Sequence record: MW349129.1
Strand: one strand, 5' to 3'
Length of the DNA stretch: 64,000 nucleotides
A program made the translations under genes and the position numbers. This document shows positions 3,740 to 59,741 of the stretch, piece after piece. Position 1 is the stretch's first letter. Each line of letters opens with the position of its first letter. Below the pieces are notes generated by a model. That model saw only the letters and a list, made by a program, of their open reading frames with translations. It searched no databases and had not been told where the DNA came from.

Positions 3740-4792
3740 ATGTCCAAATACGATTTAACTTTATATCATCATTTAAAACAAGAAGTAAAACCATGTAGAT
3801 TAACAACTTCACAGGATGAGACAATGATACGTTGTCCTTTCTGTGGAGATTCTAAAAAGTCTAAAAGTTCAACACATTTATATATACAAAATAGAACTCC
3901 ATTTAAATATTTCTGCCAAAGATGTAATGCTTCTGGAGTTATGAGTAATAAAGTTTTAGCTATGTTAAATAGTGGTAATGTAGAAATAAATAGTTATATT
4001 AACAATCAATATAATGAATATATTTCTAATATGAATAAAAAATATGGTAAATCTTTTATCAATAGAAATACAAAAGAATTAAAATACTACCCAAATAAAT
4101 ATACTGATTTAGAAATAAGCAAGATTAATTATATTAATGAAAGATTGGGTATTAACATAGATGAGAAGGATATTGAATTATATAAGATTATTTTGAATAT
4201 AGAAGACTTTTATAAGAATAATGAATTTGATATAGATAATCAATATCAAATAAATAATCTTAATAATAATTATTTTAGTTATATGTTGAATGATAAGAAC
4301 ACTATTAACTGTAGGTTAATGAATAGCGATACATTTGGGACTAATGGGAAGAAACACTTTAAACAAAAAATATTTAAGAATTTAGCTGATGAAAGTACTA
4401 GATTTTATTCAATTAAAAATGAATTAAGATTGGATAGAAGAGTGTATAACATTCATATAGCTGAAGGATTCTTTGATATATTGGGGATATTTAATCATGT
4501 GTATAATAAAGAAATAAATGACAATGATATATTTATAGCTAATAACGGAAAAGGTTATAAATTTGTATTAAATTATCTAAACAGTTTAGGTATACTTAAT
4601 ATGAATATAAATATTTATTCTGATAGAGATGTTAAAATTACTGATTATCGCAGTAAGAGAATGCTCGGTAATTCGCTACCAGTAATTTTAAATGATGCTA
4701 ATATATATTATAATGAATTTGAAAATGAAAAAGATTTTGGAGTAACAAAAGATAAAATAAAATTATCAGAACCAATTAAGTTTAATCAATAA
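3740..4792 (+). CDS. DNA primase (zinc finger plus TOPRIM)
   Basis: CPFCGDS...CQRC zinc-binding domain; IAEGFFD and DRD TOPRIM acidic motifs. Confidence 0.85.
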   Translation: MSKYDLTLYHHLKQEVKPCRLTTSQDETMIRCPFCGDSKKSKSSTHLYIQNRTPFKYFCQRCNASGVMSNKVLAMLNSGNVEINSYINNQYNEYISNMNKKYGKSFINRNTKELKYYPNKYTDLEISKINYINERLGINIDEKDIELYKIILNIEDFYKNNEFDIDNQYQINNLNNNYFSYMLNDKNTINCRLMNSDTFGTNGKKHFKQKIFKNLADESTRFYSIKNELRLDRRVYNIHIAEGFFDILGIFNHVYNKEINDNDIFIANNGKGYKFVLNYLNSLGILNMNINIYSDRDVKITDYRSKRMLGNSLPVILNDANIYYNEFENEKDFGVTKDKIKLSEPIKFNQ

Positions 4793-44175: not shown

Positions 44176-46719
44176 ATGGCTATAGAATTTAATGATTTTA
44201 ATAGATTCAGTAAAGATGATTTAAGAAAATACAATCCTCTCTATTTTTATAAAGCATTTACTGAAGAAGATATAGAAAATTTAGATGATGTTATTAAATA
44301 TTGTCAGGGTCTAATTATTAAAGATCAATCAATGGCAGATAAATTAGAATCAAATGATTCAATGATGGAGTCTGATTTATATATAAGAGCTAAGGATGAT
44401 ACGCTTGATGATTACTATTCAGTTTTCGATAGAGATAGTATATTAAGAACTTATAAAGAAAAAAATCCTTATTATGGTAAATTAAGAAATTTATATGATA
44501 TTGATCCATACGATTCAAGAACAACTAGTGATTTTCAAATAATAAAGGCACTTAATAAAACTCTAGATAGTAAAGAAGAATCTTTATTATTGGAAAGTTA
44601 TACAGAATCAGTTGAATATTTTAAAAAAGTAACTCATACTAGAGCGTTTAATAATCAAATATATTACAGAGAAATGTTTTATATGTATCTAATTAATGCT
44701 ACTCTACATAGATATATTAATAAAACTATGTATAGAATATTTGATGTTGATAGATATACAAGGAGAGATCTTAAAAATGCATTTATATCTAATGGTTTGG
44801 ATTACTTTGATGAGTTTCCACTTGAGTACCAAAGAAGAACTTACAAAAGATTAAATGATTTAATTAGAAATAAAGGTACTAATGAAATATTTCCTATAAT
44901 TGAAGAAATATTTTCTATTAATTCTATTGATATTAATAAATATTATCTAGCTAAGCATCCGAATGATTTGAAATTTTATAAAACTAATGTAAATGATAAT
45001 TTCAATCCTTATAAAGATAATCAATATAGTTACAATGAGATTGTTGATCTTGATCCATACTGGAGAAATACTAAAGAAGAAGTTATGGATAAAGCATTTA
45101 ATGTGATACAAACTAAATATTTGTCTACAGATGCTGTTATAGATATAATTAATAATAGTAAATCTTTATCATTCTTATACAGTTTAATCAACTTAATGAA
45201 AGAAGATAAAAATATTATTGAAGATGATAGCTTTAATATGACTAATACGAGAATTAGTTCTAGAAAGTTTAATGTTTTTGATGGAATTGTTACACTTAAT
45301 ACACTTGTTATAAATTATATTAAATGGAATGATAGAATTAAAAATGATAAAAATATGAATATATATGCGTATAATTTTAATTCAGATATAAAAGATACTG
45401 TAGATGATATTCGTAGCTATATCTATTCCAGACAATTTGATAAATCAGATTATACTGATTTTGCTAAGGAACTAAATTTCCTTAATATTAAGAAATTTAA
45501 AAATAGAAATACATTAAGCTATGAAGACATTATAGATGAATATGAATCATCTGATTTAGCACAACGACAATTTAAATTCATTTCTGAAATGTTAACTGGT
45601 GAGAATGGATCAACACAATTAGAATATTATATTGAAAATGATTTAATTATTGATGGTATGCGTTATTTATGGACTCAAATATCAAACCCAGAAAGAAACT
45701 TCTTATTCAAAAATATTTCTTATTATGAAAACTTTATGAAGATATATAAGAAATTCTTAAATATAATGGTAAGAGATGGAAGAATTGATAGAGAAGATGT
45801 ATATAAAATAATGATTGAAGATGATTCAATTGATAAAGAATTAAAAGATTTTGTTAAAGTTATGAATGTTAGATTCTTAAATGAATCATATGATAGATAT
45901 AAAAATAATAAGAATGCTGAAAATATTGAAAATATAGTTACTGCAGTAAGAAAATCTATAGACTATTCAATTAAGAATAATCAATATACTTCTAAAAAAC
46001 AAATATCTAGATATCCTGCATTAAAATCATATATTTCAGATATATTAGTTTATGATGATTCTGATAAAGATTTAATAAATATTTATGACATTATTAATAT
46101 GTATAGACATAATGAGAAATTCCGTAAAGAACTAGAAGAATTAATATATAATGCGAATGATCCTCATTTAAGAGAAAAATTTATTACATTGCATAAACAA
46201 CTATTTATCAATAATTCTAGTAATGATGTATTTGATGGGTTTAAGACTTATTCAGATTATCTTAAATTTAAAGAACCTGATTTGTATTATTATACTATTG
46301 TGGAATCAGAAATATATGATGAAGATACATTTGATAGAGAAACTATCTTTAGAGAACGAATTTTTGAATTAGTTAGTAGTATTGATAATCATTTAAATTT
46401 AAAAGAACAGTATTTTACTAATAGTAATTTTGTAGGTATAGTTAATTTTATCAGAGATTATATTACCATTTTAATTACATTATTTAAATCTTATTCAACT
46501 GATTTAATTTATACTAGTCTATTATTTAAATTAGATGATAAATTTGAAAATAGTATACATTTAATAGATGAAGCTAATATTAAGTATAGTGGAACTTCTA
46601 AAAAAGTAGATAAAATCAATACGCTTGATAATAAAAATATCATTGATAAAATTAATAGAAAAGAAAATATTGAGACTAAAGACGATTTAAAAATCTCAAT
46701 AATTAAGAAGGGAGATTAA
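44176..46719 (+). CDS. Baseplate wedge-like protein
   Basis: 847 aa; LIRNKGTNEIF...IEEIF matches the KGT motif of T4 gp7 / P2 gpI-like wedge proteins. Confidence 0.55.
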   Translation: MAIEFNDFNRFSKDDLRKYNPLYFYKAFTEEDIENLDDVIKYCQGLIIKDQSMADKLESNDSMMESDLYIRAKDDTLDDYYSVFDRDSILRTYKEKNPYYGKLRNLYDIDPYDSRTTSDFQIIKALNKTLDSKEESLLLESYTESVEYFKKVTHTRAFNNQIYYREMFYMYLINATLHRYINKTMYRIFDVDRYTRRDLKNAFISNGLDYFDEFPLEYQRRTYKRLNDLIRNKGTNEIFPIIEEIFSINSIDINKYYLAKHPNDLKFYKTNVNDNFNPYKDNQYSYNEIVDLDPYWRNTKEEVMDKAFNVIQTKYLSTDAVIDIINNSKSLSFLYSLINLMKEDKNIIEDDSFNMTNTRISSRKFNVFDGIVTLNTLVINYIKWNDRIKNDKNMNIYAYNFNSDIKDTVDDIRSYIYSRQFDKSDYTDFAKELNFLNIKKFKNRNTLSYEDIIDEYESSDLAQRQFKFISEMLTGENGSTQLEYYIENDLIIDGMRYLWTQISNPERNFLFKNISYYENFMKIYKKFLNIMVRDGRIDREDVYKIMIEDDSIDKELKDFVKVMNVRFLNESYDRYKNNKNAENIENIVTAVRKSIDYSIKNNQYTSKKQISRYPALKSYISDILVYDDSDKDLINIYDIINMYRHNEKFRKELEELIYNANDPHLREKFITLHKQLFINNSSNDVFDGFKTYSDYLKFKEPDLYYYTIVESEIYDEDTFDRETIFRERIFELVSSIDNHLNLKEQYFTNSNFVGIVNFIRDYITILITLFKSYSTDLIYTSLLFKLDDKFENSIHLIDEANIKYSGTSKKVDKINTLDNKNIIDKINRKENIETKDDLKISIIKKGD

Positions 46720-50271: not shown

Positions 50272-51453
50272 TTATTTAAAGTTTCTATAGAAATCATCAA
50301 GTCCATTAAGAACAGATTCTTCTAAGAAAACTTTAATAGTTTTATTACTTTCTTTAATTGAAGCTAATTGAGATCCTTTATCATAACTGATATTAGATTC
50401 ATCAACTCCAGCAAATCCCATATCTTCTGCAATGTATTTTACATTATCTGAATTTTCTTTAATATAAGTTAAAACTTCTCTAGGTGAAAATTCAGTAATT
50501 TTACCATTAGCAAACATATCAATTGATTCATTTACCATTTGTAAATCATTAGGATTATAGTTATTATGTCCTTCTGAAATAATATTTTGAATATAAGAAT
50601 CTTGATGAGATGGAATTACTACCCACATTAATGTTATCTGTATTAATGTAATACAGATCAGACTATGTCATTATCCTATATAAGGATAAACTATATTTAG
50701 TCGTTGAACAACTTGTATTAAGTTGATGCTAATTACTTTAATAAAAGATTTTAGCAATTAATAGTTTTATCATTCTTAAATTACTTTAAGAAGCGACAAG
50801 GTTTATTTTATCGTAACAAATTAATCTTAAAGGTTTAGTAACTTCAACTTCACCAGAAGGTGTTCTATTAATTTTACTGAAACCACGCATTGAGAAAGAT
50901 ACATCAGACTTTTGTCCAATTAATCCTTTCATATCTTTACCAGCTGATGTTTGAGCTGTTTCTACTTCTCCCATTAATTTATTACCATTCCACCAAGTTC
51001 TAGTAACAATATGAGAAATATTACGTTGATCAATATACATTTGACGTTTAGGTTCATCACTTAAAGGATGACCTGCAAATTATTATTCTTCATTACTTTA
51101 ATAAAGATTAGACTATATCATCTAGGTTATATATTTAGTCGTTGAACAACTTGTATTAAGTTGATGCTGATTGAGATAATAATCTTTCCCAGCAATTAAT
51201 ATAATTTAACGTGAGCCATTTTAACCTAAAACTCACCATAAAAAGTTCTTCTTGCTAATTTTTCTTGTATTACTGGACTATCTAAACCACTTTGAATAAC
51301 ATCTTTACGATAAACACGACCATTACGGTTTTGTCTATCCGCTTCTTGTAACTCAGCAATGAATCTAACTGATTTATTATTATCTTGAACTACTTCTGGT
51401 TGAGAAGTTGTGTTAGATTCATTAATAAGATAAGCTTTTATATCTTTAGACAT
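50272..51453 (-). CDS. Prohead core protease (T4 gp21-like), three exons: 51453-51231, 51075-50810, 50625-50272; spliced 280 aa
   Basis: N.NGRVY motif. Splicing restores FYGE-SGHP and ICYD-WVVIPSH. Exon sum is 843 nt, in frame. Confidence 0.9.
50626..50809 (-). mobile_element. ORF-less group I intron, 184 nt
   Basis: P1 CGAU|AA with UUGUCG (U-G pair); P2 with GUAA loop; P4 UGCUAA/UUAGCA; R GUUCAACGACUA; S UGACAUAGUC; terminal G. Confidence 0.9.
51076..51230 (-). mobile_element. ORF-less group I intron, 155 nt
   Basis: P1 GUGAGU/GCUCAC (U-G pair); P AAUUGCUGGGAAA; Q AAUCAGCA; R GUUCAACGACUA; S UGAUAUAGUC; terminal G. Confidence 0.9.
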
Positions 51454-51487
51454 TTATTTAACTTCCTTTCACATATTAAATTTAGAA

Positions 51488-51525
51488 TATTTAAATGTTT
51501 GATAAGCAATTTTAACAATAGAATA
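51488..51525. promoter_or_regulatory. Divergent pair of late-type AACA-N6-TA promoters
   Basis: Minus AACATTTAAATA (51499-51488) toward the protease; plus AACAATAGAATA (51514-51525) toward 51554. Confidence 0.6.
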
Positions 51526-51553
51526 TTAACCTTAATGAAAATATGAATAGGAT

Positions 51554-52573
51554 GTGAAATACTTGAAGAATTTCAATGAAGTAGAAAGTGATTTAAAATA
51601 TTTCATAGAACAAACAGATAATGATTCTTTTCCCGTTGATTTATATGATAAATTAATTGATATTGAAAAGTATGCAGATGTAGATTCTTTTACAAGTGAT
51701 CAAGTTAGAAAATCGGTTAAATATCTTGTTGCTTTAAAAGATTCATTAGAAAGATTTGAAATTGAAAATGAACAGTCTGAAATGGCAGTCAATATGGTTC
51801 TTCATAAAATAGAATTCTTAAAGGATAAGTATAATACTCTTTATATTAATAAACGTGTTCCAAATAATGGTTACATAGATAACTTATATAAAGAAGATTT
51901 TAGTTCTAATATTAATACAGAATTTAATTTTAAACAATTAACTGTAGCATTGGCTGAAAGCCCTGCTGATTCTAAATTAGAAAGAAAAGCTGTTATTAAT
52001 TTCTTAATGGAAGGTACTATGAATTATCTTAATGAAGCTTATGACGATGAAGATGATGAAGATTATCTTGATGGTATTGATAGTAGTTTTGAAACTTCTA
52101 AAGAACCTAAAGTTGCTGAAAAGAATTTAAATAGATTGATTGGTTCTGTTAAGAAAGCAACCGCATCTTCTAAGAATATGGATGATAAGCAATTAGCTAA
52201 AGCTAATCGTATTAGATTTGTAAGAGCTTTATTAACTGCGATTTTATTCTGTATTGGATTGAAAATTAGTTCATCGGCTATAGGTAAAGCTAAAACAGCT
52301 TTAATAGGTTTATTGACTGTAATTGTCTATAATGCAACTAAAGGTAATGAACTTAATAGACTTATCATTGTATTAGAAGAAAGAATTCAATCTTTAGAAA
52401 ATAGAATTGATTCAACTGATGATGAAGGAAAAAGAAAAGAATTAAGAATATTAAAATCAGACTTAGAAGGTCAACTTAAGAAAGCTAATTTCCAAAAGAA
52501 ATCTATTGAAAAAACTAAGAATGCGATTTCTCGTGGAGATGTAAACGATAGTGGGTCATCATATGACTATTAA
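51554..52573 (+). CDS. Probable inner-head / core protein
   Basis: 339 aa; YLNE|AY-type cleavage motif followed by an acidic tract; hydrophobic helices and a coiled coil; in the head cluster. Confidence 0.5.
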   Translation: MKYLKNFNEVESDLKYFIEQTDNDSFPVDLYDKLIDIEKYADVDSFTSDQVRKSVKYLVALKDSLERFEIENEQSEMAVNMVLHKIEFLKDKYNTLYINKRVPNNGYIDNLYKEDFSSNINTEFNFKQLTVALAESPADSKLERKAVINFLMEGTMNYLNEAYDDEDDEDYLDGIDSSFETSKEPKVAEKNLNRLIGSVKKATASSKNMDDKQLAKANRIRFVRALLTAILFCIGLKISSSAIGKAKTALIGLLTVIVYNATKGNELNRLIIVLEERIQSLENRIDSTDDEGKRKELRILKSDLEGQLKKANFQKKSIEKTKNAISRGDVNDSGSSYDY

Positions 52574-53237
52574 TAATAGAGATCTTTTATCTGAATCAAT
52601 TAAAAAATTATTAAATGGTAATAATATTCTTAATGAAGCTGAAGATGATGAAACTAATAATGATTCTTCAGATACTAATACAGATGATACAAGTTCTGAA
52701 GATACTAATAGTGATAATGAAGAATCTTCAGAAGAAAATACAGAAACAGAAGAAGAAAATCAAGATGATAGTAATGAAGATGATTCTATTACAGATGATT
52801 CTGAAAGTGATTCAGAATTAGATGATGGTTCAGAAGAAAATTCAGATGAAGATAATCCTTTAGATGATCAACCTGAAGAAGAAAATAATGAAACTAAAGA
52901 AACTAATTCTGATAAATATCTAAAATTACAAATATTTAATAAATTAAACGATTTAATAGATGTGTCATTAAAATTTAAAGATATTGTAAATGAAAAGAAT
53001 ATGGAATCATTTGATAAAAATGAAAAAGAAAAAATGAGTGAAGTTACAGTACAAACTTCAAATAATATAGACAGTTTAATTGATAGTATTAATTTATTTA
53101 ACAATAAATTTATAAATAATATTGATGCTGATAAATGTGAGAAACTTTATAAGAAGTTTGAAAATACTTATAACGAAATCTTCAATATTTATTTAAAAGA
53201 ATACAATAAATTGAATAAAGACAAAAAAAGCAAATAG
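52551..53237 (+). CDS. Acidic prohead core/scaffold-like protein
   Basis: LLSES and ILNEAE sites with a long D/E/S tract; directly upstream of the capsid gene. Confidence 0.55.
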   Translation: MGHHMTINNRDLLSESIKKLLNGNNILNEAEDDETNNDSSDTNTDDTSSEDTNSDNEESSEENTETEEENQDDSNEDDSITDDSESDSELDDGSEENSDEDNPLDDQPEEENNETKETNSDKYLKLQIFNKLNDLIDVSLKFKDIVNEKNMESFDKNEKEKMSEVTVQTSNNIDSLIDSINLFNNKFINNIDADKCEKLYKKFENTYNEIFNIYLKEYNKLNKDKKSK

Positions 53238-53340
53238 TTTTATATTTCAAATTTTATTCCGTTTTATTAATATTTATAAAATTAATAACATTAACATATG
53301 AAAAGAAATATTTCATTACAAATAATGATTATTTTTTATA

Positions 53341-53352
53341 AACAAATTTATA
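53341..53352 (+). promoter_or_regulatory. Late-type promoter AACA-N6-TA for the major capsid gene
   Basis: AACAAATTTATA; a second match lies at 53287-53298. Confidence 0.6.
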
Positions 53353-53415
53353 TAATAAAATTAATAAATATAAACTACACGCTAATATATTTAAGAAAAG
53401 GAGCAGAAAAAATTT

Positions 53416-55020
53416 ATGTTAAACCCAAACAGAATTAAAGATGAATTTTCGGTTCGTTTAGAAGATATCGAAAACTCTATTAATGAATCATATAATCTTA
53501 GTACTATCGGTGGAGATTTCGCTGCTATTGCTACTGATGATGCAGTATTTGAAAGCTATAAAGATCAATTATTAGAAGGTTTTGACGCTGCTGAAGGAGA
53601 AGCTTTAGCTGGAATGTTAGATAATACTCGTGAAGAAATCTTAATGGAATCTTCAATGGGACCTATCCAACCTTACGCTTCACTTTCTATGCCTATTTTA
53701 GTTAAACTTTGGGCTCGTTTAGCTTTAACTGAAGCTTTACCAACTCAAGTTGCTAACAAACCAAACTTTACAGTTCCAATCTTAACTCCATATGTTGTGG
53801 ATGCAGATGGTAACAAACATGCTTTACCAGAATCAATCAATAACACTCCTGAAACTTTAGTTGGATTAGTTCAAATTAAAGAAGATATCCCAGTTGAAGG
53901 TGGAAAAATTACTGATTACGATTTATTTACTGGATTAAAAGAAGGTAAAGAAGTTCGTAAAGGTATTGACCGTTTAGATCGTAAATTCAAAATCGTTGAA
54001 GCTAAATGGAGTGATTCATTCGATGAACGTACTTCAGCTGCAGGATTCGTTGAATTAGGTTCTAACGTAGTTAAATTACAAGACAATGATACATTAGTAG
54101 GTCAAATTAAATACCCTACAAATGGCGATGGTGAAGTTGAAACTGATACTGTCTTAGGTAAAGTAGATGTTTCTTCAGGTGAAATTACTTTGACTTCTGC
54201 TTCAGGTAAATTAACTGATGTTAAAGTTAAAGGTTATGTAGCTTCTGAACAACATACTTCAGCTACAAACGTTGAACTTGGTTTAACTCGTAAAGATGTT
54301 GTTATCGATACAGCTCAACACATCGAAGCTACAGTACCTCTTGAAGTAATTCAAGATATGAAAGCTACTTATGATATCGATGGAGTTGCTCGTTTATCAG
54401 AAACTATGTCTCAATTATCTAGTCAAAAAGTTGACTTAGACATTATTGAATTCTTAGATCACGAATATAAAGAAACTGATGCTAAATATCACTTCAGCTT
54501 CGATGTATTCCCACATAGTGATTACAGTGCTCACCCTAAAGATTGGTTAGAAGGTCTACGTGAAGTAATTGACCATACTACTCAATCAATGAAAAACGAT
54601 TACAAACTATATGACGTTCAATTCGTTATCGTTGGTAACCCATTAGATGTTCGTTTAATCCCTAACGTTTCTTGGACTTTCAATGGTGGAGACCGTAACG
54701 CTGATGCTTATTCTAACGGAATCAAAATTAACTATTCATTAGGTGCTGCTTCAGGTACTGCTAACTACCGTATTATCGGTTCTGACTTAGTTCGTCAAGG
54801 TGAATTGACTATTATTGCAATTCCTCAACAAGACAACTATAAAACATTCATGTTCTACCCTTACACGTTCAACGTTGTAAATGGTGGAGGTTACCTAAAT
54901 ACTCGTAACCCTAATGTTCCTAACATGATGATGACTCGTAGATATACAGTTGAATCATTCGTTCCGATCATTGGACGCATTACAATCAAAAACAACAACG
55001 GTTCAGTATACGCTCGTTAA
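53416..55020 (+). CDS. Major capsid protein
   Basis: 534 aa; strong high-expression codon bias; acidic propeptide with ILME|S; position between core proteins and terminase; strong terminator. Confidence 0.8.
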   Translation: MLNPNRIKDEFSVRLEDIENSINESYNLSTIGGDFAAIATDDAVFESYKDQLLEGFDAAEGEALAGMLDNTREEILMESSMGPIQPYASLSMPILVKLWARLALTEALPTQVANKPNFTVPILTPYVVDADGNKHALPESINNTPETLVGLVQIKEDIPVEGGKITDYDLFTGLKEGKEVRKGIDRLDRKFKIVEAKWSDSFDERTSAAGFVELGSNVVKLQDNDTLVGQIKYPTNGDGEVETDTVLGKVDVSSGEITLTSASGKLTDVKVKGYVASEQHTSATNVELGLTRKDVVIDTAQHIEATVPLEVIQDMKATYDIDGVARLSETMSQLSSQKVDLDIIEFLDHEYKETDAKYHFSFDVFPHSDYSAHPKDWLEGLREVIDHTTQSMKNDYKLYDVQFVIVGNPLDVRLIPNVSWTFNGGDRNADAYSNGIKINYSLGAASGTANYRIIGSDLVRQGELTIIAIPQQDNYKTFMFYPYTFNVVNGGGYLNTRNPNVPNMMMTRRYTVESFVPIIGRITIKNNNGSVYAR

Positions 55021-55050
55021 GAGTAGTACTTTATTCTTGTTATTTATATT

Positions 55051-55079
55051 ACCCATACATCTCTCTGAGGTGTATGGGT
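55051..55079 (+). terminator. Terminator after the capsid gene
   Basis: ACCCATACA...TGTATGGGT followed by TTATTTT. Confidence 0.8.
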
Positions 55080-55116
55080 TTATTTTATATCAGAAAAGGA
55101 GAATAAATATTTCATT

Positions 55117-56271
55117 ATGAATTTACAAGAAGAACAGCAATTAAATAAAATTAATAAAATAATGAATATCAATGAAGATGCTTTTAATTTTAGTAAAAAT
55201 ACTTCATTATTAAGAGAAATAGATGAAGAATTTAAAACTTTATTAGATAGTTATAATTACGATAAATCTGATTTTGATTTAATTGATAAATCTGAAATAA
55301 ATAAAATAGCTACTAATATTTCTAAAATCACTAAAAAGCTATTTAATACTAATATGAAATTAAAATTCATTGAAGCCGATCCTAAAGGAAAAGATAAATT
55401 TAGAGTAGACTCAGTTGCTTCTACAATGATATATCCAGAACAAATTAGGAATACAGTAGATGGAATTTCTAAGATAGTTATAGAGGAAAAGAATGGTATA
55501 TATTATTCTAAACCTAGAGAAATTGAAGTATTTATGGAGTTATCATCTATCAGATACTTTTTAGAAATGAAAAAGAATTCTAAGAAAGTAGCTTTTTCTA
55601 ATTTTAATGAAAGAGTTTGTACTTCAGTACTACTACATGAAATAGGTCATAATCTATTTTTACCTATTGAAATTAAAGTAATAACTCAAGGTAAAGAACC
55701 TGCTTTTGAGCTTAAGTATAAAGACAATAAACCGGTACAATTTCAATACACTAAGGATATAGAAGCAGACACTGATAGAAATTTAAAATTAGCTGGACCT
55801 ATGATAATTTCTATGACAATAATGGTTGCTATTTTAACTTCATTAACAGGTGTAGCCTCTATAACTGGAATTACTTCTATCTTTTCTTTCTTTAAATTAG
55901 GATCAATGGATAATAAAAGAGTAAAAAAAATGAATTATAATTTATCTGAAAGATCTGCCAATCAATTACCTGCATTATATGGATATGCAAAAGAGAATAT
56001 AGTGCTTTATGATATAGTTTATGCCGCAACTAATAGTAAAATGGAAAAAACTAAAAATAATATTTTCAGTAAAATATTTAGAGGATTAATGTATCCTGGT
56101 AGATTATTTATTAGAAATTATAAAGACTATACAGCGGATTCTATTGACAGTACTATTAAGACTCTTAAATTTGAAATAAATAATCCTAATAATAGTAAAG
56201 AAGTTAAAGAAGGTTTAAAACAACAACTTTCTGATATTCAAACTTTGATGAAGAAATCAGATAATATGTAG
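55117..56271 (+). CDS. Zincin-like (HExxH) protein with a hydrophobic segment, probably virion-associated
   Basis: VLLHEIGHNLF and a downstream ERSAN...LYGY. Confidence 0.55.
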   Translation: MNLQEEQQLNKINKIMNINEDAFNFSKNTSLLREIDEEFKTLLDSYNYDKSDFDLIDKSEINKIATNISKITKKLFNTNMKLKFIEADPKGKDKFRVDSVASTMIYPEQIRNTVDGISKIVIEEKNGIYYSKPREIEVFMELSSIRYFLEMKKNSKKVAFSNFNERVCTSVLLHEIGHNLFLPIEIKVITQGKEPAFELKYKDNKPVQFQYTKDIEADTDRNLKLAGPMIISMTIMVAILTSLTGVASITGITSIFSFFKLGSMDNKRVKKMNYNLSERSANQLPALYGYAKENIVLYDIVYAATNSKMEKTKNNIFSKIFRGLMYPGRLFIRNYKDYTADSIDSTIKTLKFEINNPNNSKEVKEGLKQQLSDIQTLMKKSDNM

Positions 56272-56295
56272 ATAAGAAAAGTGAGTTGAATAAAT

Positions 56296-59200
56296 ATGAT
56301 TACTAAACCAAAGTTAAAGAAAAAAGTGTATTACGATTATAAAACTAATAATATTAGTTTTTTAAGAGTAGCTAGAGACCTTAAAAAGAACAACGTTAGA
56401 AATTATGGGATTCCATTAACTCTATACGATAAAAATCTTATAGGTGTGGATCCTTGGGATCCTGAAATTTCTGATGAAATGAAAACTCGTGTATTAAGAG
56501 AAGCTAAAATTAATATATGGTTTTATCTAAGGGAAGTTATAAGAGTTCCAGTTCCTGGTGGTAAAGTTATGTATGAACTTCATAGAGGTAATATGGCTAT
56601 GACGTTTTGTATGTTACACAATTTAGATACAGCGATAATGCTTCCACGTCAGCACTATAAAACATATTCAGCTGTATGTTATTATTCATGGATAATGTTA
56701 TTAGTAGGTAGTAACTATACAATGTTATTTACTCATAAATCTTATTCAGATACAACAGAAAACTTAAAACGTCTTAAAAACTTATTTAAAGAGAAATGTT
56801 TACCTGAATATGTATTAGCTAATTTTGGAGATAAAAATGATAGAGATAAGATTAATGAATTTCAATTAGCTAGTAATAACAATACTATTAAAACAGTTTC
56901 ACCTCCGACTAACAGTGAGAGTGCGAACAAAGCCGGTAATAAAATAAAAATTCGCAAATAACTGTTTCTAACATTTATTTATAAATACTGAAATGGATGT
57001 GGAGAAATGGCTGATAACAGTTTTGCGACATTAGAAAATAGAAAAAATATATTCCTGAAGAAATTAGAAGAAATAAATGGAGAAGTATTTGAAATGGTTG
57101 GAGAATTTAAAAATACAAATGAAGAAACACTTTTTAAATGTAAGAAATGTGATAATTTGTTTCTCTCTAGCCCGTATAATATAGTAAGAAGAAAAAGAAA
57201 TGGTTGTAATATTTGTTTAAAAAAGAAAAAGAAATCTAAAACAAAACCTGAGCTAACTATTAAAAATATTAAACTAAGAAAAGAAAAATTTATTGAAAAA
57301 CTAAATGCAAAGTATAAAAATAAAGAGTTTGAATATTTAAGTGGATTTATTGATTTAAAGACACAATGTAAATTCAAATGTAATAATTGTGGTAATTCAA
57401 ATTATTGGATAACTCCTGATTATATAATTAAAAAAAGTAATATAAATTGTAATAAGTGTTCTTCACCTCATAACAAACAAGACTTAAATAGTTATATTGA
57501 GGATATTAAATCTAAATATGGTGAAAGATTTAATATTGAAATAGATAAGAATAAAAACTTTGAAAACTCTAAATCTAAAGTCCACATAAATTGTAATAAT
57601 TGTGATCATGATTTTAAAGCAACTGCAGATAGATTTAAATTAGGTGGAATTTGTCCTTATTGTAATATGACTACTTTGGAAAAAGAAGCTTATGAAATTT
57701 TATTAAAATACTTTAGCAAAGAAGAAATAGAGATTCAAAAAGGGTTTGACAATTTAGTTTTCAAAAATGCTCAAAAGTTTGATTTTTATATTGAAAAGGA
57801 AAATTTATTAATAGAAGTTGATGGTAAACAGCATATTAATGATAAATCTTTCGGTGATGAAAAAGAATCTGAAATTTCCTTTCTTAGAGATCAAAATAAA
57901 AATAAATTTGTTTTAGACAATAATTTAAAATTAATAAGAATATTATACAACCAAGGAATAGAAACTGTCTTAATGTGCTATTTTGATCACGGAATTTTGA
58001 CAAGAAATATTTTTTCTATAAATATATAAAATGCCTTTGCCGGCTATAAAATTTATTTAATTGCTGGAAATACTTTATCAAGTTAATCAGCATCACTAAT
58101 TATAGTGTTCAACGACTAAATAATAAATAGTATTATAAAATACTAAGATATAGTCTCATCTTTATAATTTTTATAAAGTTAAGATAATTGAGAGGTAGTA
58201 CTGTAAATAGTTGCAGTAGTAAAAGAATATTAATTGCTGGAAAAGATTATTATCTCAATCAGCATCAACTTAATACAAGTTGTTCAACGACTAAATATAT
58301 TCGCTTATTTATATGAGTATGATATAGTCTGATCTATATTTAATAAATATAGTTAACTTAATGACCTATGGTTTGGTTAGATGAGTGGGCTTTCATTCCA
58401 CATAATCAAACAATGTTTGAAGCAATGAGACCAGCAGTCTCTACAGCATCTGCAATAGCTAAAAAGAATGGTACACCTTACGGACTTCTAATTACAACAA
58501 CACCGAGTACCTTAGATGTTCCTCAAGGACAATACTTCTTTGAACAAATGAACGATGCAGCTCAATGGACAGAAAAAATATATGATTATTATATTAATTC
58601 TGAAGAAGAAGGTAATGAAAAATTAGAAGAATATATGGAAAGTAATTCAGGTAATTCATTCATCTATATAGAATATTCATATAAAGAATTAGGTAAAGAT
58701 GACACTTGGTTAGAAAAGCAAAAACGTCAAATTGGTTCTTTAGAAGCAGTTAAACGTGAAATTCTTCTTGAATGGGCATTTAGTAATGATGATTCATTAT
58801 TTGATGAAGAACAAATGACGGAGTTATCATTATATGCAAATAAAGAGATATATAATACTATTGATTTTAAAATAAACAACAAAACGTATTACGTGCATAT
58901 GGTTAAAAAGATGGATAATATGCATGAAAAAAATTGGTTAGTTGGTATTGATATATCTGGTGGTCTTGGTCGAGATAATACTGCATTTACTGTAGTTGAT
59001 CCGGGTACATTAGAACCAGTAATGGTTTTCCAAAATAATATAATTAACGGACCTACTTTTAGAAAATTAATTAAAGAGCTTATTACACTTTATATACCTA
59101 ACGCAGTATTAATACCTGAACGTAACTATGCTGGTACAGTGATGATAGAAGATATGATTCAAACTGATGGTATTGGAGATAATATTTTTTATTCATTAAA

Positions 59201-59741
59201 GAATAGAACAGCAGAAAAACAAGTTGAAGTGAATAAGCAAGTATTTAATGAAATTCCTAGACATAGTACTAATAAAGTTACTAAACAAGTAAGAAGATAT
59301 GGCATTGATACAACTAAAAAATCTCGTGATCTAATGCTTAATGAAATTTTATCAATGATCGTTGAAGAAAAGCCTTATCTAGTTAATAATAAACTATTAT
59401 TCCAACAAATAAAATCTCTTCAAATGAAAAAAGGTAGAATTGATCACCCTGATGGAGGACATGATGACTTACTCATGAGTTATTTATTCTGTTTATATGC
59501 ATACTATTACGAAAAAGATATTAAAAAATTTGTTAAAGTTAAATACGGTTCAATGGTATCTCCAACTGGAGAAAATGCGGAAGAAATTGAAAAAGAAAGA
59601 CAAGCTAGAAGTAAAGATATTGCATCTATAAAACGTATTGGAGGAATTATTGATGGTAATTCACCTACCAATCCTCTGTTACAGAATAATAATTCATCCC
59701 CAGATCAAAAATCAAAAAGAATAATGAACTTATTAGATTGA
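56296..59741 (+). CDS. terL: Terminase large subunit, three exons: 56296-56937, 58191-58204, 58364-59741; spliced 677 aa
   Basis: Walker A-like LPRQHYKT; splicing gives NKAG-RGSTV-PMVWLDE (Walker B); nuclease GIDISGGLGRD and HDDLLMS. Exon sum is 2034 nt, in frame. Confidence 0.92.
56970..56981 (+). promoter_or_regulatory. Late-type promoter inside the intron, driving the endonuclease
   Basis: AACATTTATTTA, 26 nt upstream of the ATG, with a GGAG RBS. Confidence 0.5.
57007..58029 (+). CDS. Intron-encoded homing endonuclease: repeated CxxC zinc ribbons plus a PD-(D/E)XK/Vsr-like nuclease domain
   Basis: Six CxxC pairs in three repeats; FDFYI...LIEVDGKQH. Confidence 0.8.
   Translation: MADNSFATLENRKNIFLKKLEEINGEVFEMVGEFKNTNEETLFKCKKCDNLFLSSPYNIVRRKRNGCNICLKKKKKSKTKPELTIKNIKLRKEKFIEKLNAKYKNKEFEYLSGFIDLKTQCKFKCNNCGNSNYWITPDYIIKKSNINCNKCSSPHNKQDLNSYIEDIKSKYGERFNIEIDKNKNFENSKSKVHINCNNCDHDFKATADRFKLGGICPYCNMTTLEKEAYEILLKYFSKEEIEIQKGFDNLVFKNAQKFDFYIEKENLLIEVDGKQHINDKSFGDEKESEISFLRDQNKNKFVLDNNLKLIRILYNQGIETVLMCYFDHGILTRNIFSINI
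58191..58204 (+). other. 14-nt micro-exon of terminase (AGAGGTAGTACTGT)
   Basis: Bounded by a terminal G and by a P1 U-G pair (UACUGU|AA with UUGCAGUA); restores the frame. Confidence 0.85.
58205..58363 (+). mobile_element. ORF-less group I intron, 159 nt
   Basis: P AAUUGCUGGAAA; Q AAUCAGCA; R GUUCAACGACUA; S UGAUAUAGUC; P3 GAAUAU/AUAUUC; terminal G at 58363. Confidence 0.9.

Follow-up and report, generated by a model that had tools for sequence, protein, structure and literature searches.

The Protease and Terminase Loci of Phage Madawaska

We have analyzed a 64,000-nucleotide (nt) stretch of DNA, in what follows the window, that corresponds to bases 1-64000 of Staphylococcus phage Madawaska (MW349129.1; 100% identity, identical coordinates), an AR9-like jumbo phage with a genome of 265 kb. 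Two essential head genes of the window, those for the prohead scaffold/protease and for the large terminase (TerL), are interrupted by four elements that are very probably group I introns belonging to one phage-borne family, the near-identity of P4-P7 between introns at unrelated sites probably reflecting ectopic gene conversion. The protease gene lies on the minus strand and consists of exon 1 (51231-51453, as given by both the GenBank join and the spliced reading frame), intron 1 (protI1, 51076-51230, 155 nt), exon 2 (50810-51075, 266 nt), intron 2 (protI2, 50626-50809, 184 nt) and exon 3 (50272-50625). On the plus strand TerL begins with exon 1 (56296-56937; 642 nt or 214 codons, ending in AAA GCC GGT), which is followed by intron 1 (terI1, 56938-58190, 1253 nt), a 14-nt micro-exon AGAGGTAGTACTGT (58191-58204) that encodes R-G-S-T-(V), intron 2 (terI2, 58205-58363, 159 nt) and exon 3 (58364-59741). 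The P1 loop (L1) of terI1 holds an open reading frame (ORF) for a homing endonuclease of 340 amino acids (aa) on the plus strand at 57007-58029; the other three introns are ORF-less, and their lengths and boundaries are those that an initial annotation of the window had given.

GenBank assembles the protease coding sequence (CDS), 50272..51453 on the minus strand, from three joined exons ('predicted based on alignment'). For TerL it has two unconnected CDSs, at 56296-56961 and at 58368-59741, and in the gap a third, at 57007-58029, labelled 'homing endonuclease'. In the paper that describes the phage (Korn et al., bioRxiv 10.1101/2020.12.14.422802) introns were predicted for these genes from protein alignment only, and of TerL it is said that it 'could not be confidently reconstructed'. 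The first of the annotated TerL CDSs extends 24 nt into terI1 to a stop at 56961, and the CDS for the C-terminal portion opens at an internal ATG (58368), 4 nt into exon 3; both annotated products are artefacts, since splicing was not resolved in the annotation.

Exon Joining and Intron-less Homologues

Removal of the four elements in silico produces uninterrupted ORFs of 843 nt (a protease of 280 aa) and 2034 nt (a TerL of 677 aa), so that the junctions GAGT|CAGGT, CGAT|TGGGT, GGT|AGAGGT and CTGT|ACCT proposed in the initial annotation are all correct and precise exon ligation, at this in silico level, restores both host genes. Contiguity with intron-less homologues, on which that annotation had made its proposal depend, is indeed observed: the joined Madawaska flanks align at the DNA level with the intron-less alleles of phages SA1 and S6 without a gap. 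The protease gene is uninterrupted in SA1 and TerL in S6, DC4 and SA1, and the protein sequences obtained after splicing in Madawaska run collinear with intact counterparts, for the protease with that of SA1 and for TerL with those of S6 and SA1. In the protease the protI1 junction (YGE S|GHP) and the protI2 junction (CYD|WVV) both agree with the SA1 sequence. Spliced TerL reads ANKAG|RGSTV|PMVWLDEW, a layout identical to that of the intact S6 and SA1 proteins, and the residues RGST(V) supplied by the micro-exon thus stand shortly before the Walker B-like WLDEW. The junction peptides predicted from the joined exons are FYGESGHPL, ICYDWVVIP and ANKAGRGSTVPMVWLDEW. In-frame stop codons are present within the elements, including a TAG directly after the protI1 splice site, which excludes read-through or an intein.

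The intron-less alleles differ from Madawaska in the codons at the splice sites themselves, with GGA rather than GGT at 56935-56937 and a Ser codon AGT rather than T|CA at 51231-51233, and thus offer no U at position -1 for the U·G pair described below. The difference would fit either immunity to invasion or co-conversion of the adjoining exon sequence.

Group I Structure and Covariation

Each of the four introns is preceded by a 5' exon that ends in U and that forms a U·G pair with the intron's own guide. The pairings, read directly from the sequence, bear out the initial annotation: GUGAGU/GCUCAC (exon/guide) in protI1, CGAU/GUCG in protI2, GCCGGU/GCCGGC in terI1 and UACUGU/GCAGUA in terI2. 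For terI1 the guide lies beyond the endonuclease gene, at 58041-58046, and pairs with the exon end at 56932-56937, the ribozyme core extending from ∼58041 to 58190. A terminal G is found in all four (TTTG|CAGG, AATG|TGGG, ATTG|AGAG and AATG|ACCT, in the same order), and the core elements AAUUGCUGGAAA, AAUCAGCA, GUUCAACGACUAAA and AUGAUAUAGUCU are present, which we take to fit the classical P/Q/R/S consensus. In terI2 the helices are P1 (58199-58204/58213-58218), P3 (58225-30/58297-302), P4 (58235-39/58260-64), P5 (58244-47/58252-55), P6 (58266-71/58277-82), P7 (58289-93/58325-29), P8 (58304-08/58313-17) and P9 (58334-41/58345-52), with the terminal G at 58363.

In order to describe the family we have built a covariance model, R1, from a hand-drawn structure comprising P1, the P3/P7 pseudoknot, P4, P5, P6, P8 and P9. 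It scores protI2 at 147.8 bits, terI2 at 146.8, protI1 at 131.6 and terI1 at 123.1. Covariation was evaluated over 29 R1 matches from five phages (Madawaska, MarsHill, Machias, LY01 and PB50). Standard pairs occupy 94.4% of cells, as compared with 28-45% when the partners are slid, changes on both sides are seen in 27 of the 40 pairs, and the covariation score is 0.444 versus at most 0.072 for slid partners, a value reached by none of 500 shuffles. P3, P5, P6, P8 and P9 covary, with P4 and P7 nearly invariant; the compensatory changes that the initial annotation had noted in P3 and P4 are real, and those in P5, P6, P8 and P9 come in addition. A conserved core of P3-P9 with the P3/P7 pseudoknot, P4-P6, J8/7 and covariation is thus found, with exceptions in P8 and P9. 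Exon and guide also change together, the terI1 pairing being GCAGGU/GCUUGC in MarsHill versus GCCGGU/GCCGGC in Madawaska, and the -6 pair at the terI2 site being U-A in Madawaska and C-G in Machias.

A search with group I models, which the initial annotation had proposed, gives a divided answer. When a 361-nt segment is scanned the Rfam model RF00028 is the top match for both TerL cores, and its alignment reproduces the hand-drawn helices; the scores, 32.1 bits (E 1.3e-6) for terI2 and 31.8 bits for terI1, fall below the gathering threshold of 50. The P7.1/P7.2 helices that would place the introns in subgroup IA2 are missing, J7/3 being just AAU in all of the Staphylococcus copies. In unconstrained minimum free energy folding all four introns form P1, P9 and, where modelled, P4-P5, and protI2 also forms P2; P6, P7 and P8 are recovered in some introns only, and none of P6-P8 in protI1.

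A Shared Core at Unrelated Sites

A 38-nt block, AGCATCAACTTAATACAAGTTGTTCAACGACTAAATAT, occurs exactly three times, once in each of the ORF-less introns of the window (50693-50730 and 51131-51168 on the minus strand, 58261-58298 on the plus strand), and is matched in none of 100 shuffles. The second part of the initial observation, a match of 73 of 74 nt between protI1 and terI2, is likewise reproduced and consists of an unbroken 59-nt block with a single mismatch and a further 14 identical positions ahead of it.

The origin of this similarity can be judged by comparing four segments separately, here always in the order 5' P3 segment; P4-P7 core; P3'-P8-J8/7; P7'-P9-tail. Relative to its orthologues in MarsHill and LY01, Madawaska terI2 is identical at 13/13; 52/66 and 53/66, respectively; 27/28; and 38/40 and 36/39, respectively. 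Relative to the paralogue protI1 in the same genome the values are 9/13, 65/66, 10/29 and 26/40. The MarsHill and LY01 terI2 introns agree with one another at 13/13, 61/63, 28/28 and 35/40, and the protI1 introns of Madawaska and LY01 at 12/13, 64/66, 16/17 and 36/40. Since the flanks of terI2 are orthologous to those in MarsHill and LY01 and only the core is different, an intron was already present at that site. The simplest reading of these alignments is that in the Madawaska lineage the terI2 core was overwritten by ∼45-75 nt of core sequence of the protI1 type, presumably by ectopic gene conversion.

Sequence, structure, covariation, exon joining in silico and the mosaic pattern are direct results of the present analysis. 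In the mechanism that we propose, the protease and TerL pre-mRNAs would fold into a standard group I core made up of P1, in which the exon end pairs with the intron-specific guide, the P3/P7 pseudoknot and P4-P6, together with P8 and P9 in most cases. Free guanosine would attack just 3' of the U in the U·G pair, the exons would then be joined with use of the intron's terminal G, and joining would restore the reading frames, including the 14-nt micro-exon of TerL. The ORF-less copies would be reduced relatives of larger AR9-type introns, the peripheral stems that were lost varying from copy to copy, and the near-identity of P4-P7 at unrelated sites would reflect ectopic gene conversion among dispersed copies with no recent new insertion.

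Stem Losses and Alternative Explanations

Of the two protease introns protI2 is the more complete, with P1, a P2 hairpin closed by a GUAA loop (GCAA in LY01 and PB50) and P3-P9. There is no P2 in protI1 or terI2, and protI1 is also without the P8 hairpin, only CCUAG remaining between P3' and J8/7. This P8-less form of protI1 is common to LY01 and Machias, and the PB50 orthologue retains a 6-base-pair (bp) P8. Three further Madawaska copies are P8-less with a CUAAG linker, namely the gyrB intron and both introns of the N-terminal part of the viral RNA polymerase (RNAP) β gene. The shortest intron found, 127 nt, occupies the terI1 site in MarsHill and LY01 (positions 9268-9394 of L003, our MarsHill locus), keeps P3-P8 without P2, P9 or an ORF, and is followed by the same micro-exon and then by the terI2 orthologue. 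Stems are thus lost in different combinations, P2 and P9 in the 127-nt terI1-site introns of MarsHill and LY01, and P2 and P8 in protI1 (155 nt) and the two viral RNAP β N-terminal copies (∼146 nt).

The first nine nucleotides of protI1, UUUAGGUUA (51222-51230, minus strand), are complementary to UAACCUAGA (51120-51128) at the position of the missing P8, and LY01 retains the complement, one U-A pair having become U·G. We considered this L1 pairing as a substitute for P8 and rejected it: 1.7% of L1 shuffles equal it, it overlaps P3', and nothing similar is seen in the three other P8-less copies. The 9-bp complement is probably incidental.

Several observations weigh against the interpretation of these elements as self-splicing group I introns homogenized by conversion. 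No Rfam group I model matches anywhere in the window at the gathering threshold, a scan of 13 kb at E≤10 is likewise without a match, and the RF00028 scores for the TerL cores stay below gathering, as given above. The covariation alignment was fitted to the R1 structure and is biased in its favor; the slid controls carry the same bias, yet score far lower. Folding energies are only -26 to -43 kcal/mol, with z-scores of -2 to -5, and the introns have just 23-25% G+C (19-24% in the modelled cores). Most copies have no P2 and L9 loops of 3 nt, so that the usual tetraloop-receptor braces are missing, and several are without P8, normally part of the conserved P3-P8 domain; low stability, missing braces and the loss of P8 together make unaided self-splicing uncertain. 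Finally, splicing and its autocatalysis, as well as the direction and mechanism of the conversion, are deduced from sequence, the direction from just two orthologues.

The mini-introns could be too reduced to self-splice, and be removed with the help of a protein, through coupling to the ribosome or at low temperature, an explanation that we hold to be possible, though with less than even confidence. The helper would be a phage or host protein, that is, a maturase-like endonuclease or an RNA chaperone. Low predicted stability, the loss of P2, P8 or P9 and the lack of tetraloop contacts all speak for such dependence. The phages form plaques at 30 and not at 37 °C (Korn et al.), and this would also fit, although any tie to intron folding is speculation. 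On the basis of weak predicted stability and missing peripheral tertiary contacts a need for a protein or trans-acting helper, as suggested in the initial annotation, is plausible, and it is compatible with the group I interpretation favored here because the chemistry would remain that of group I introns.

Against such dependence, engineered mini-ribozymes derived from the T4 sunY intron are reportedly active at high Mg2+, as is said to be the case for a Tetrahymena derivative reduced to P3-P7. It may be, and we put this forward tentatively, as a proposal on the doubtful side of even, that the 127-159-nt copies are the smallest natural self-splicing group I ribozymes and form a natural deletion series whose core is kept uniform by gene conversion.

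A different account of the shared core is that a minimal core was recently copied to new gene sites by transposition and acquired a new guide at each; the route would be, for example, reverse splicing into RNA followed by reverse transcription and recombination. That all copies belong to one family with site-specific guides is in its favor, as is the fact that more than the core is shared across sites: terI2, the intron of the DNA polymerase exonuclease subunit and an extra protease intron of Machias and LY01 have P3 and P8 types in common (11-12/13 and 21-23/28, respectively), a pattern that suggests older spread between sites. The phage moreover encodes a reverse transcriptase. For the 73/74 pair, however, the P3, P8 and P9 flanks of terI2 are orthologous and only the core differs; neither an intermediate nor a target-site signature was seen, and reverse splicing would insert at guide-matching sites, where a new guide is unneeded. 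We consider recent retargeting unlikely. Of the proposal in the initial annotation that the core has moved between introns, the swapping is supported, terI2 having orthologous flanks and a protease-type core, and the copying and retargeting to a new site is not, for this pair. The RNA-directed DNA polymerase of Madawaska is encoded at 214290-215795 (L046 890-2395, where L046 is Madawaska 213401-263400); its function is unclear according to Korn et al., and to connect it with intron spread is speculation.

That the elements are not introns at all, and merely a dispersed non-coding repeat between gene fragments translated separately, as the two TerL CDSs in GenBank would have it, is extremely improbable and was rejected, since a 14-nt micro-exon is untranslatable alone, joining of the flanks is exact, in frame and in agreement with intact homologues, and the elements combine all group I hallmarks and covariation with in-frame stops.

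Family Size, Distribution and Endonuclease Genes

R1 finds 12 copies in Madawaska, the same 12 places that are found by BLAST, and all of them are within genes. Besides the two each in the prohead protease and TerL, there are two in the N-terminal part of viral RNAP β, separated by a 35-nt exon, two in the C-terminal part of non-viral RNAP β, and one each in the C-terminal part of viral RNAP β, the DNA polymerase catalytic subunit, the DNA polymerase exonuclease subunit and gyrase B. Ten of the 12 lie in CDSs that are joined in GenBank, the remaining two being the TerL copies between the separate TerL CDSs. Excluding the copy in the DNA polymerase catalytic subunit, ORF-less Madawaska copies with ends that can be placed measure ∼146-184 nt. 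Guide pairings of 4-9 bp were located, by script or by eye, in seven of the eight copies outside protease and TerL, and that of the DNA polymerase catalytic subunit is ambiguous. Modelled cores across the family have 19-29% G+C. One R1 match in the window, at 44317-44407 (E 0.036), lies in coding sequence with the core motifs missing and was taken as chance.

Beyond Madawaska, BLAST places the family at 132 positions in six phages (Madawaska, MarsHill, LY01, Machias, AH12 and PB50). It detects no copy in S6, DC4, PALS_2 or SA1, and a BLAST search with terI2 returned nothing outside the jumbo-phage clade. For DC4, which is without this family, the authors of the genome report that Rfam found no introns. 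The core pattern is present at 35 loci in IMG/VR, many on contigs of 200-400 kb, and R1 has 123 matches there. In bacterial and archaeal genomes the core pattern has eight matches, all in unrelated metagenome-assembled genomes, and none in Staphylococcus; the eight matches mean that the pattern describes a generic group I core and is no marker of the family. Model matches of 95-103 nt in IMG/VR were considered as still smaller introns and set aside, as the one that was read (L017, ∼4033-4132) has no P4-P5; it probably represents an incomplete copy or else the 3' half of some larger intron.

Short exons and closely spaced introns recur in the family. The viral RNAP β N-terminal gene (L046, 24224-24538) contains the two P8-less introns of ∼146 nt on either side of the 35-nt micro-exon ATTTACACGTCAAGAGATTACAACAATTATTGAGT. 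In MarsHill (MW248466) three ORF-less introns of 127, ∼157 and ∼160 nt are found within ∼530 nt of TerL (L003, 9268-9797), the third of them after EAMRP|, and the same three are present in LY01; Madawaska lacks the third and reads straight through that site (window 58364-58430). The first TerL intron of Machias and PB50 follows NAES| (Machias L042, 7305-7655), 15 nt ahead of the position at which terI1 is inserted in Madawaska, and leaves a 28-nt micro-exon before the intron at the terI2 site. With this offset intron there are at least four distinct insertion sites in ∼110 nt of TerL coding sequence. Where Madawaska has its two protease mini-introns, S6 (L002, 2400-3546) and MarsHill (L003, 2555-3295) have a different insertion carrying a LAGLIDADG gene, probably another intron lineage, because the R1 match adjoining it in S6 is weak (2434-2513, E 0.043).

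Endonuclease genes are present at a given site in some phages and absent in others. An endonuclease ORF in a peripheral loop is found in terI1 alone among the four introns of the window; its product matches PHROG 559, 'HNH endonuclease', with E 1e-43 and contains the Pfam DUF4379 treble-clef zinc finger. The same site has this HNH-family ORF in Madawaska and none in MarsHill or LY01, and at the terI2 site an ORF is inserted at P8 in Machias and PB50 and is lacking in Madawaska. The description of the core as being without its own endonuclease thus holds for the 155-, 159- and 184-nt introns as such and fails for their sites, some of which carry endonuclease genes in sister phages. Copies with and without the gene at one site fit the known cycle of gain and loss, for which the ideas of 'endonuclease invasion' and 'collaborative homing' have been reviewed (PMC3984707).

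Relation to Known Introns and Implications

The pre-tRNA-Ile intron of Azoarcus, ∼205 nt in length, is the usual 'minimal' natural group I ribozyme and is, like the copies described here, a compact core without large peripheral domains. It is G+C-rich and keeps P2, P8, P9 and the tetraloop-receptor braces, whereas the present copies are A+T-rich, lack the braces and are 20-40% shorter. Phage group I introns insert at conserved catalytic motifs, and several ORF-less ones reportedly stand close together in orf142 of the Staphylococcus phage Twort. The ribozymes of Twort and other IA2 phage introns are ∼240 nt or more and, unlike the Staphylococcus copies of the present work, have P2, P7.1/P7.2 and a full P3-P8 domain. 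Twort orf142 and other IA2 introns (T4 td/nrdB/sunY, SPO1) resemble the family in endonuclease gain and loss and 'collaborative homing' (PMC3984707).

Closely related are the introns of the Bacillus jumbo phage AR9/PBS1 (Lavysh et al. 2016, as cited by Korn et al.); mature mRNAs determined by experiment in AR9 are mentioned by Korn et al. AR9 belongs to the same phage clade and has introns in the same kinds of host gene (TerL, protease, RNAP and DNA polymerase subunits). Its TerL has a five-exon annotation, and the four related introns that R1 matches in the gene share the P/Q/S core motifs UUAACUGCUGG, AAUCAGCAUC and AAGAUAUAGUCU with the Staphylococcus introns; they are ORF-less and clustered, the first at the same G|RG site as terI1, and the terI2 site is unoccupied. 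The R1-matched regions in AR9 are 231-285 nt with 33-39% G+C, versus 127-184 nt for whole Staphylococcus introns of ∼19-29% G+C, and a long P6 extension and a long insert between P7 and P3' are present in AR9 and absent from the Staphylococcus copies. By this comparison the latter are reduced relatives of a known intron set, and the earlier description of a stripped-down group I core is borne out.

Large numbers of small introns have also been described in the 'Jug' gut jumbo phages (PMC12880540), which have thousands of group I introns that are mostly ORF-less, average ∼206 nt and split terL, polymerase and other essential genes, with splicing backed by metatranscriptomes for 37 of 76. The hosts and the clade are different, the introns are larger on average, and the Jug paper (PMC12880540) describes no shared-core gene conversion, loss of P8 or 14-nt micro-exon. 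Already known, then, are the introns in these Madawaska genes, multiple ORF-less introns in AR9 TerL and small introns in gut jumbo phages; what is new relative to the annotated introns is their small size, the missing stems and the copying of cores between copies. Our literature search, whose coverage was incomplete, found no prior description of the full TerL model with its 14-nt micro-exon, of sizes of 127-159 nt, of natural P8-less and P9-less forms or of the core conversion, and searches for the term 'mini-intron' in connection with these phages and for 'smallest group I intron' found no paper and nothing usable, respectively.

Many small ORF-less group I introns in essential genes of jumbo phages are, accordingly, a known general phenomenon, to which the Madawaska introns add in several ways. 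The TerL model is now complete, with three exons that include a 14-nt micro-exon shortly before the Walker B motif, and R1 detects these introns where Rfam fails, which aids the annotation of AR9-like and other jumbo phages. The discordance between flanks and core is a clear-cut case of concerted evolution acting on dispersed introns of one viral genome. If the 127-159-nt copies do form a natural series of self-splicing deletions then P2, P8 or P9 would each be dispensable in vivo, since the copies sit in essential genes of a viable phage, and if splicing is unaided they would be unusually small natural ribozymes (127-159 nt), useful for work on minimal ribozymes and RNA folding.

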